This document shows positions 36,250-38,790 of a DNA stretch of 42,882 bases, in pieces; the first letter of the stretch is position 1, and the number at the start of each line of letters is the position of its first letter. Source of the DNA: Octopus bimaculoides (taxonomy: Eukaryota). The stretch is from the NCBI RefSeq assembly GCF_001194135.2, contig NC_069000.1, positions 11,755,286 through 11,798,167 on the forward strand, read 5' to 3'. Below the pieces are notes generated by a model. The model saw only the letters and a list, made by a program, of their open reading frames with translations, was not told the DNA's origin and made no database searches. Position numbers and translations under genes: made by a program.

Positions 36250-36762
36250 ATCAGACTGTTGCAGGCTTTCATATTTATGATTCAGTGCGACCATGAAATA
36301 GAGAATAAGAAGCCACACATAGTATTAATTGAGAAAGCAAGCAAACGATGCTGGATCATAGATACAGCATGTCCAGCTGACAACAAGGTATGCGATACGG
36401 AAGAAAGAAAAGTCGATAGATATAACAGGTTAGCTTGGGAGGTTAAGTAGTTGTGGTCGCTGAAGAAGAGGGCAGTAGTACCAATAATTGTCGGAGCCCA
36501 GGAAATAGTGAGTAAAAATCTTGAGAAGTTCATGGAACAAATAGGGGCTGCAATAAGGGCGGAGCCCTTGCAGTAAACAGCACTTGCTTGTAACCGCTTG
36601 AATACTCCGGGTGGTGCTCGAAAAATAAGGGGTGTGTTACCTTAGTTCACTGGTAGTGAACAGCTGGCACCATAGTACATCTCCAGCCTTAGAAGCTGTG
36701 CAAAGACAATAAATAACAACAACAACAACAACAATAATAGTAATAATAATAATAATAATAAT
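36250..36762 (+). mobile_element. Dong/R4-clade non-LTR retrotransposon 3' end (RLE domain), copy 1, with (AAC)/(AAT) tail
   Basis: MIQCDHEIENKKPHIVLIEKASKRCWIIDTACPADNKV...EVK*LWSLKKRAVVPIIVG...; PD..D-type restriction-like endonuclease with PD mutated to PH; stop near 36628, 3' UTR, tail 36708-36762. Confidence 0.9.
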
Positions 36763-37252
36763 CTCTAAAAGAAACGGAGAAACTTTCAAAATACAAAGAC
36801 CTGGAAATAGAATTAACTCGAATGTGGAGCCAAAAAACAGAAACAATTTCTATCATAGTAGGCATATTAGATATGTTAAAAAAAAATTCAGACAAATACA
36901 TAGCAAAAACACCAGGACTGACAAATATACATTATATACAAAAAATAGCGCTACTAGATACAGCACACATCATACGTAAAACACTTTCAATACAGTAAAA
37001 TTGAGAGCATCATAACAAAACCACAGCACATACCCAAGGCACACAAAGCTGCGCTAGGAAGTGCAAGTGAAAGCACGTGATAAAAATAAGACTACTGAAT
37101 GATGGTGATAATAATAATAATAATATTAATAATAATAATAATAATAATAATAATAATAATAATAATAATAATAATGATAATAATAATAATAATAATAATA
37201 ATAATAATAATAATAATAATAATAATAATAATAATAATGATAATAATAATAA
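36763..37252 (+). mobile_element. Dong/R4-type 3' end, copy 2 (family B), with (AAT)n tail
   Basis: SLKETEKLSKYKDLEIELTRMWSQKTETISIIVG...IQKIALLDTAHIIRKTLSIQ* (stop 36998); tail about 37099-37252. Confidence 0.9.
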
Positions 37253-37253
37253 C

Positions 37254-37565
37254 GGTCCCTTAAAATTTGAAAGAGAAATAATTTGGAGCATGAGACCAAT
37301 AAAGGTCGTGCCTGTAATAATTGGTGCGTTGGGAACAGTAAGCAAAGATACAACAAATGGCTGAAGGAGATGGGAATAGAATGGCCTGTAGAACTCCTAC
37401 GGAAAGTTTGTCGCTTAGAAACAGCGAGGATTATCGGGAAGGTTCTAAAGCACTTGAAAGACAGCTGAAAATATATGGATACCTAAGGTTACAGGTAGTA
37501 AGCCACTACCCATGGGAATCCTACCAGGAAGAAGACCGAGCCTAACCAAACCAAAATAATAATAA
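37254..37565 (+). mobile_element. Dong/R4-type 3' end, copy 3 (family C)
   Basis: IWSMRPIKVVPVIIGALGTVSKD, frameshift, NKWLKEMGIEWPVELLRKVCRLETARIIGKVL; short AAT tail. Confidence 0.85.
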
Positions 37566-37575
37566 GAGCAGCAAC

Positions 37576-37809
37576 ATTATTATTATTATTATTATTATTA
37601 TTATTATTATTATTATTATTATTATTATTATTGTAAATATTATTATTATTATTATTATTATTATTATTATTATTATTATTATTATTATTATTGTAAATAT
37701 TATTATTATTATTATTATTATTATTATTATTATTATTATTATTATTATTATCATCATTATTATTATTACTATTATTATTATTATTATTATTGTTATTATT
37801 ATTATTATT
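37576..37809. repeat. (ATT)n array with a 60-bp higher-order duplication
   Basis: The interruption GTAAAT occurs at 37633 and 37693; lines 37621-37680 and 37681-37740 are identical. Confidence 0.95.
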
Positions 37810-38098
37810 GGCATTAAGATTACTGTTCATAGTTTTGAGAAACTCGTATTGGGTTCAATATCACCCAATCTGAAGAAGCATCTATCTGGACACTTGAAAA
37901 ATACATTACAATTTTGGCTCCACTTGGAACTGCATGCATACCGCGTAAAGTACACCCTGTCTGAAGGCCTTGTGACTTAACAGACAGTGAAAATCTCCGG
38001 AACACACAATATCTTCAATCTACATTTACAATATTGGACACTGTGTGACGTCTTTCAATAATAATAATAATAATAATAATAATAATAATAATAATAAT
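37810..38098 (+). mobile_element. Dong/R4-type 3' end, copy 4 (family D, decayed), with (AAT)n tail
   Basis: LVLGSISPNLKKHL resembles the IGALG(S/T)I..NLKKHL segment of the same C-terminus; distinct 3' UTR ending GTGTGACGTCTTTC then AAT repeats. Confidence 0.6.
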
Positions 38099-38503
38099 AT
38101 GACAATGTGTCTCTGAAAGAAACGGAGAAACTCTCAAAATACCCGAATGTGGAGTCTAAAAACAGAGACAATCCCTATAATAATAGGTGAATTAGGTATA
38201 ATGAAAAAACACATTCAGACAAATACTGAACCAAAACACCAGGACTTACGAATCTATATAACATACAGAAAAATAACACTACTAGGCACCGCACACATCC
38301 TTACGTAACACTCTTTCAATAAGTAAAGAATAAGAACACCACAACAAACCACAGTACATAATCGAAGGCATACAGAGCTGCGCACGGCAGTGCAGTGAAA
38401 GCACGTGATGGAGAGAAGACTACTGAACAACAACAACAACAACAACAACAACAACAACGATAACGATAATAATAATAATAATAATAATAATAATAATAAT
38501 AAT
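38099..38503 (+). mobile_element. Dong/R4-type 3' end, copy 5 (family B), with (AAC)/(AAT) tail
   Basis: DNVSLKETEKLSKY... then collinear with copy 2 including 3' UTR GAAAGCACGTGAT...ACTACTGAA. Confidence 0.9.
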
Positions 38504-38790
38504 AAAAAAAAAAAACAGAAACAATTCCTATCATAGTAGGTGCCTTAGGTATAATAAAAAAATATTCAGACAAATACATAACAAAAACACCAGGACTTAC
38601 AAATATGTATAACATACAGAAAATTGCACTACTGGGTACTGCACACATTCTACGCAAAACACTTTCAATACAGTAAACATAAGAGCACCACAGCAAACCA
38701 CAGCACATACCCAAGGCGCACAGAGCTGCGCTCGGTAGTGAAGTGAAAGCACGTTATAAAAATAAAACTACTGAATAATAATAATAAAAT
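38504..38790 (+). mobile_element. Dong/R4-type 3' end, copy 6 (family B, least decayed)
   Basis: KTETIPIIVGALGIIKKYSDKYITKTPGLTNMYNIQKIALLGTAHILRKTLSIQ* uninterrupted; same UTR; short AAT tail. Confidence 0.92.

Follow-up and report, generated by a model that had tools for sequence, protein, structure and literature searches.

We analysed a 42.9-kb window of the Octopus bimaculoides genome (the whole stretch of 42,882 nucleotides from contig NC_069000.1, positions 11,755,286 to 11,798,167), in which a stack of truncated 3′ ends of Dong-like long interspersed elements (LINEs) occupies 2.6 kb. Direct reading of positions 35800 to 39300 with compression of the repeats resolved six plus-strand units between approximately 36190 and 38785 (F1 to F6) (Table 1), each closed by a tract of (AAT)n, in two cases preceded by (AAC)n. 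All of the tails are of the AAT type, and four of the 5′ ends in the stack abut a sense tail. Outside the stack, the window contains no (AAT), (ATT), or (AAC) run with four or more units and is densely populated by microsatellites of other kinds.

Table 1 Units, tails, and intervening tract of the LINE stack (positions are those of the window)
Feature	Position	Strand	Remarks
F1, 5′-truncated LINE 3′ end	36190-36709	+	Family 1, second lineage
F1 tail, (AAC)6 (AAT)2 AGT (AAT)7	36710-36762	+	Next base is the start of F2
F2, 5′-truncated copy	36763-37097	+	Family 2
F2 tail, TGATGGTGAT (AAT)5 ATT (AAT)16 GAT (AAT)20 GAT (AAT)3 AA	37098-37252	+	155 bp
F3, 5′-truncated copy	37253-37552	+	Family 3, second lineage; tail to 37565
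F3 tail, short AAAATAATAATAA only	37553-37565	+	
10-nt spacer GAGCAGCAAC and (ATT)n microsatellite	37566-37809		Microsatellite 37576-37809, 234 bp
F4	37810-38056	+	Provisionally family 4
F4 tail, (AAT)14	38057-38098	+	F5 begins directly behind
F5	38099-38425	+	Family 2; same untranslated region as F2 and F6
F5 tail, (AAC)11 GAT AAC GAT (AAT)12, then A run	38426-38516	+	A run merges into the start of F6
F6	38517-38773	+	Family 2; coding part intact
F6 tail, (AAT)4	38774-38785	+	Followed by unique flank AAATGAGTGTGTGCG..

Organization of the stack

The start of F1 is uncertain, with homology running from 36187 or 36247 onward. This unit retains the last ~130 codons, including the core of a restriction-like endonuclease (RLE), followed by a 3′ untranslated region (UTR) of ~130 nt; the core reads KPH[D>H]IV..IIDTACPAD..EERKVDRY, with a PD-to-PH change, and the frame carries two in-frame stops. 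In F2 the final 78 codons are uninterrupted as far as the native stop (SLKETEKLSKYKDLEIE...LLDTAHIIRKTLSIQ) and are followed by a UTR of ~100 nt that ends in ..AAGACTACTGAA. Directly behind the F2 tail, F3 contributes the last ~66 codons, broken by one frameshift (..VVPVIIGALGTVSK / LKEMGIEWPVELLRKVCRLETARIIGKVLKHLKDS, then stop), and its own UTR. F5 has decayed through a 23-nt internal deletion and frameshifts, and F6 keeps the last 54 codons up to the native stop (KTETIPIIVGALGIIKK...LLGTAHILRKTLSIQ) together with its UTR. Two of the six tails open with (AAC)n before continuing as (AAT)n (36710-36732 and 38426-38458), and (AAC)4 also stands at one junction of a stack in another species, at locus L005 (9942-9953); such (AAC)n starts may reflect slippage or mis-templating at the junction of UTR and tail. 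To the right of the stack lies a (TG)n-rich block with a duplicated ~55-bp unit (38915-39030; ..GTGTGTATGCGTTTGTGTGAGTGTCGTGTGTGTG..).

Nucleotide BLAST places F2, F5, and F6 in one family (family 2), with 79 to 86% identity over the coding sequence and 3′ UTR, and shows no similarity of F1, F3, or F4 to these copies, to one another, or to the rest of the window. Homology connects F1, F2, and F3 at the protein level, and F1 and F3 are nearest (36 to 48%) to a second lineage of the same superfamily (relatives P0263, P0266, P0269, and P0261). We scored the units with a profile of the C-terminus of LINE proteins that combine a reverse transcriptase (RT) with an RLE, built from 115 full-length relatives, and obtained E-values of 3e-30 for F1, 1e-23 for F2, 2.5e-16 for F6, 5.5e-11 for F5, and 2.6e-7 for F3, with the second frame of F3 at 0.03. 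No further profile match was found on either strand of the window. Overlap with the endonuclease core is confined to F1 (PH..D..E.K..Y) and to the beginnings of F2 and F5; F3 and F6 specify no more than the final 54 to 66 residues, downstream of the core.

F4 stands apart, as its likeness to the other units is limited to a 9-of-14 residue motif (LAPLGTACIPRKV; a C-terminus-like ..LAPLGTACIPRKVHPV before a stop) and the (AAT)14 tail. A coding identity is rejected for F4 on present evidence, its profile score being no better than that of its reverse frames and no copy of it appearing in any fetched locus of the relatives, and we list it provisionally as family 4.

The original prediction had described six 5′-truncated plus-strand 3′ ends from about four families, each encoding the RLE region and each beginning right behind the preceding tail. 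The layout and tails bear this description out, as does the division into three units with a common UTR (F2, F5, and F6) and three with unrelated ones, and coding identity holds for five units and fails for F4. The RLE region proved to be present in F1 and at the starts of F2 and F5, and absent from F3 and F6; a start directly on the previous tail applies to F2, F3, F5, and F6, and not to F1, which lacks an AAT tract before it, or to F4, which follows an (ATT)n block. Three families are secure (family 2 and those of F1 and F3), with F4 as a provisional fourth.

The block between F3 and F4, to which the original prediction made no reference, has the opposite polarity to the tails and reads (ATT)19 GTAAAT (ATT)18 GTAAAT (ATT)17 ATCATC (ATT)4 ACT (ATT)7 GTT (ATT)5. 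F4 adjoins this block rather than an AAT tail, and the 10-nt spacer parts the block from the tail of F3. Its 63-bp periodicity is suggestive of an internal duplication or of a loop in the assembly. We rejected an origin of the block from a Dong-like copy on the minus strand, no minus-strand profile match being present in the region. A similar switch of polarity lies beside the L005 stack (10658-11643), where (AAT)29 is followed by (TAA)6, a 48-nt fragment, (ATT)18, and (TAT)252; the 48-nt fragment resembles sequence behind (AAT)12 farther upstream in that locus.

Protein family of the fragments

Neither Pfam, applied to the fragments, nor word-indexed searching of proteins with the degraded peptide of F1 gave a match, and the 78-aa peptide of F2, used in an exhaustive HMMER search, returned 1,160 matches, always at the C-terminus of the target. 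The full-length relatives are ~1,100 to 1,250 aa long and carry RVT_1, then a CCHC motif, then PD..D..K; P0036 (1,134 aa) and many of the others match RVT_1 at 1e-29 to 1e-31. In P0036 the C-terminal part reads CRLCHQQEEHVSHIVSGC (CCHC) ... RPDIII..LIDVAVP..KEVEKLSKY, and its endonuclease segment can be aligned at each motif with the R2 endonuclease in 9nl3, with a weak local E-value. A protein of the P0036 type is a reverse transcriptase with a C-terminal restriction-like endonuclease. The RVT_1 part is missing from the fragments in the window through 5′ truncation. The closest named match is the O. bimaculoides protein A0A0L8I0U5, with 78% identity to F2 and 89% to F6.

The segment coding for EKLSKYKDLEIE (36768-36830 in F2) has ~75 to 85% nucleotide identity between the octopus-like copies and relatives in very distant host taxa, and some full-length relatives (P0242, P0275, and P0291) have an extra OTU-like cysteine protease domain (PF02338) alongside RVT_1. 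Upstream of the RT open reading frame (ORF) in L005 is another ORF (4840-6000) that starts MAEGLRNRNVGPKLGLHLCERCEK.., appears coiled-coil-like, and may be an ORF1; the R4/Dong group is usually described as having a single ORF. Locus L002 holds a different, nearly full-length RLE LINE (6380-9830; ~30% to P0036, several frame breaks); a truncated Dong-like copy follows it immediately, without an intervening AAT tract.

A further family 2 copy, also 5′ truncated, is present in the short, octopus-associated contig L001 behind a SINE-like repeat (resembling a short interspersed element) and (TAA)4. The SINE-like repeat occurs in L001 at 89-281 and in the window at 6868-7050 (+) and 3166-3354 (-), with ~80 to 82% identity between the window and L001 copies. 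A SINE or other nonautonomous element as the identity of family 2 was ruled out by four different 5′ ends (F5, F2, F6, and L001) and by the LINE coding sequence, and an Rfam search over the window gave no tRNA, 5S, or other RNA match.

Association of relatives with AAT tracts

We collected 88 loci that encode relatives, comprising large contigs obtained via exact-protein look-ups and 80 metagenome contigs of host DNA, and counted junctions for 97 copies in the first 85 loci. A downstream tract was scored when at least four units lay within 300 bp of the end of the ORF, and an upstream tract when at least four units ended no more than 20 bp from the start of homology, the latter for 5′-truncated copies with upstream sequence. 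Downstream of the ORF, sense (AAT)n was present in 39 of 56 copies and antisense (ATT)n in 1 of 56; upstream of truncated copies, abutting sense (AAT)n was present in 26 of 58, compared with a single (ATT)n among the same 58. Half of the eight full-length copies with upstream sequence begin directly behind (TAA)n, namely, behind (TAA)6 and (TAA)9 in L004, (ATA)17 in L019, and (ATA)12 in L086, the last being a copy of the second lineage. Full-length copies close with (TAA)n, and the copy in Spodoptera frugiperda closes with (AAT)6. The starts in L004, L019, and L086, the S. frugiperda end, and the 97-copy counts together indicate that both lineages are tied to (TAA)n in a fixed polarity. Specificity of Dong for (TAA)n has been reported in insects, molluscs, and cnidarians (PMC7998251, PMC3812793), and the 5′ junction of Dong in Bombyx mori is (TAA)n (PMC3774820).

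Stacks are also found at other loci. In L004, two full-length elements of different families (65% identity over the last 300 coding nucleotides) lie head to tail, both with (TAA)n before and behind. In L005, ~380 bp of (TAA)n precedes a full-length copy; (AAT)12, a fragment, and more (TAA)n lead to a truncated copy, and (TAA)5, a second fragment, and (AAT)29 come next, after which the tract switches to (ATT)18 and (TAT)252. Both L061 and L070 contain three stacked 3′ ends. At least two copies are present in 11 of the 85 loci, which are mostly short, and all copies share one strand in 9 of these 11. The same-strand rule has exceptions, as shown by L084 (1-1811), where an (ATA)16 tract lies at the centre of a head-to-head arrangement of two copies on the minus strand and one on the plus strand. 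Within the locus sample, stacks of mixed families occur in several phyla.

Origin of the stack

In our reading, to which we assign a probability of roughly 0.8, the region is a graveyard in which (TAA)n-specific Dong-like LINEs inserted independently, each copy dead on arrival, at least five and probably six times. The insertions derive from two lineages and three to four families. Each element has one ORF encoding an RT domain and, at the C-terminus, a CCHC motif and PD-(D/E)xK endonuclease.

Comparison of the family 2 copies bears on the timing of these events. Relative to F2, the 5′ end of F5 lies 11 nt farther 5′ (..DNVSLKETEKLSKY) and that of F6 75 nt farther 3′, and the L001 copy is at least 180 nt longer. 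The upstream neighbours of the family 2 copies (F1, F4, and F5) are unrelated, with three other families interleaved. Across 261 columns, F6 has 11 private changes, F2 has 20, and F5 has 30, making F6 the youngest and F5 the oldest copy, and ORF decay runs in the same direction: the frames of F2 and F6 run uninterrupted to their native stops, and F1, F3, and F5 contain stops, frameshifts, or a deletion. Because of these differing 5′ ends, unrelated flanks, interleaved families, unequal private changes, and ORF decay, we favour separate insertions at different times.

Five fragment identities, the relations among the families, the junctions, the polar association with AAT, and the recurrence of stacks in relatives are direct observations, and the mechanism that we propose to accompany them is modelled on the R2/R4 paradigm. 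The element protein would nick the TTA strand of a TAA/AAT tract, and the 3′ end released in this way would anneal to the (UAA)n tail on the RNA of the element and serve as primer for reverse transcription. Synthesis would halt early in most cases, leaving 5′-truncated copies. A new copy would then sit between AAT tracts of the same polarity, with leftover target on its 5′ side and the templated tail plus leftover target on its 3′ side, so that one target would become two usable ones and polarity would put each later copy on the same strand. Repetition of this cycle by co-resident families, combined with slippage and duplication inside the tracts, would produce a head-to-tail stack. The enzymology, the order of events, and the use of the tails, rather than an older microsatellite, as targets are steps that we infer.

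Several observations weigh against this reading. The polarity of the (ATT)n block is wrong for a landing pad that renews itself, and the model offers no ready origin for it. No AAT tract lies upstream of F1, and the founding target is not visible. F4 gave no significant match (E-value of 0.04), and its plus-strand frames score no better in the profile search than its reverse frames. The comparison of private changes draws on only three to four copies. Among truncated relatives, 32 of 58 are without an abutting upstream AAT tract, and loss of the upstream target or off-target insertion must therefore be frequent. Some families of the HERO clade are also microsatellite specific (PMC4640811). Lastly, the window is a short-read-style draft, its scaffold interrupted by 19 N runs totalling 8,353 N (394-1064, 2150-2528, ... 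41061-41609).

This last point raises the question of whether a short-read assembler linked 3′ ends of separate loci by way of their AAT tracts, with the polarity switch marking a misjoin. Most of the N runs, 8.35 kb in all, lie beside microsatellites of TA/TG/ATAC type, and the window is exceptionally rich in simple repeats (263 Tandem Repeats Finder rows); AAT and ATT tracts are the sole links between the units, and a graph loop could account for the 63-bp period of (ATT)n. The whole stack, however, lies in one gap-free contig (35241-39322) in which the longest uninterrupted repeat run is 60 bp, and the interruptions in the tracts anchor reads, so ordinary reads could bridge each junction. 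Equivalent stacks also exist in independent contigs, both in L004 and L005, which have long-read-like names, and in the metagenome contigs L061 and L070. We regard an artefactual stack as very unlikely, while noting that tract lengths, above all that of the periodic (ATT)n block, may be unreliable.

A different biological route would have some or all neighbouring units arise from a single, chimeric integration in which the RT, having copied one truncated RNA, jumped to the (UAA)n tail of a second element's RNA. End-to-end template jumping occurs with the R2 reverse transcriptase in vitro, and it would give an identical layout of body, tail, body, and tail. Against this, the private loads of 11, 20, and 30 in family 2 and the unequal ORF decay indicate different ages, and the long tails between units (42 to 155 bp) would each need templating. 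We judge a single integration of this kind to be very unlikely.

Tandem duplication or unequal crossing-over of one unit could in principle have made the family 2 copies, given that F2 and F5 start so close to each other and that internal duplications are visible within the tracts. The further 5′ reach of F5 and the shorter F6 speak against it, as does the absence of any flank or truncation point common to the family 2 copies, whose neighbours are unrelated and separated by three interleaved families, and we find this origin highly improbable. Divergence between copies, which the original prediction had offered as its argument for serial insertion, is by itself no proof, because an old duplication diverges too; the conclusion is retained on the truncation points, flanks, families, and mutation loads. 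That the fragments are exons of a host gene or a domesticated domain has next to no probability: F2 and F6 have unbroken frames up to the native stop, but the frames are short and terminal, those of F1, F3, and F5 are broken, the fragments close as native stop, UTR, and microsatellite, and all of the homologues are C-termini of RT proteins.

The prediction had itself named host exons and a single tandem duplication as alternatives, and both are rejected here, by the decayed frames and by the differing truncation points and unrelated flanks, respectively. Its concern that AAT enrichment might be lacking at 5′ junctions genome-wide is eased by the excess of sense over antisense tracts in the sampled relatives, and its appeal to the TAA-repeat specificity of Dong agrees with both the published record and the polar association in 97 copies. 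The idea of a self-reinforcing landing pad is consistent with these data, because head-to-tail stacks of mixed families recur in other taxa. The suggestion that such stacks generate AAT microsatellites fares well locally, all of the runs in the window being inside the stack, and gained no support at the genome-wide level; a literature search on the abundance of AAT microsatellites in octopus found nothing relevant.

Relation to known elements

Dong of B. mori and DongAg and DongBg of Anopheles and Biomphalaria resemble the relatives described here in having an RT, a C-terminal CCHC motif and PD-(D/E)xK endonuclease, and a single ORF. Dong and our elements also have in common their presence in molluscs and their (TAA)n target, with a tail of (TAA)n in the sense orientation (PMC3812793, PMC7998251, PMC3774820). 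The window differs in containing only 5′-truncated ends and in the two tails that open with (AAC)n. Close full-length relatives occur in S. frugiperda and corals, which are among the taxa listed for R4/Dong-like elements (PMC7998251). The placement in R4/Dong rests on architecture and target, not RT phylogeny, and HERO, whose members bear an RLE like the present elements, is among the alternatives. Hero is much the rarer in Octopus vulgaris, with two families and 13 recent insertions, compared with five recently active Dong-R4 families with 1,129 insertions (PMC13282606). Membership in the R2 clade was rejected, the target being (TAA)n rather than 28S rDNA, and solved R2 proteins match the family over the RT domain only (~1e-28), whereas family members match one another end to end (E-value of 0).

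Elements of the Dong/R4 group lack N-terminal zinc fingers and have a diverged Myb/SANT-like N-terminal domain (PMC7998251). In full-length relatives, Pfam revealed no zinc finger toward the N-terminus, where a conserved R-x-K-W-[ST]-x-E-E..W..IWRxRNP motif is present; Pfam and a PDB profile search gave no link of this motif to Myb/SANT. A self-cleaving ribozyme like that of hepatitis delta virus (HDV) has been described at the 5′ end of Dong (PMC3774820). An Rfam search at an E-value of ≤1 over four loci with full-length relatives found no HDV-like ribozyme, a pseudoknotted structure that is often missed, and the B. mori Dong 5′ end sequence from the same source had no match in the S. frugiperda locus.

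Repeat libraries of octopus include several co-existing Dong-R4 families from the same host group (PMC9115989, PMC8967140, PMC13282606), and in coleoids one of these studies places Dong-R4 among the most enriched LINE families (PMC8967140). These papers give counts and ages, and the passages searched do not deal with insertion context or stacking. Searching the literature, we found no explicit account of multi-family Dong stacks in AAT tracts.

Head-to-tail arrays are well known from other elements, such as TRAS and SART in telomeric repeats, the HeT-A/TART arrays, and Zepp clusters in poly(A) tails. The RLE LINE Utopia inserts in tandem in U2 genes (PMC4640811). All of these resemble the octopus stack in target-primed insertion into a repeat, in recreating their target, in forming same-strand arrays, and in consisting mostly of 5′-truncated copies. 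The octopus stack differs from them in that its target is an interstitial trinucleotide microsatellite and in that several families of two lineages are mixed.

Implications

Multi-family stacks are the expected outcome of the known Dong mechanism, which the octopus stack leaves unchanged. The specificity of Dong for (TAA)n, including in molluscs, is already published, and the literature noted above also documents several abundant and partly active Dong-R4 families in octopus (PMC3812793, PMC7998251, PMC8967140, PMC9115989, PMC13282606). We therefore regard the stack as an ordinary case of a known phenomenon, apart from one minor oddity, the opposite-polarity tract.

A broader proposal is that Dong-like LINEs are self-amplifying, each insertion doubling its target so that multi-family stacks of one polarity grow at a few loci, that such stacks might explain much of the long AAT microsatellites of octopus and other invertebrates, and that adjacent (ATT)n blocks might be an undescribed by-product of integration, for which fold-back or second-strand mispriming might be responsible. 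We consider this doubtful as a whole; the cases behind the by-product idea are the block at 37576-37809 of the window, positions 10817-11643 of L005, and the head-to-head copies in L084.

For the annotation of octopus repeats, regions of this kind are easily mislabelled as simple repeats or unknown elements, and AAT microsatellite markers beside these elements will be multi-copy. The stack provides a clean example of a microsatellite-specific LINE that renews the tract into which it inserts and so piles up several families on one strand, and it bears on how related LINE families share a single safe-harbour target.

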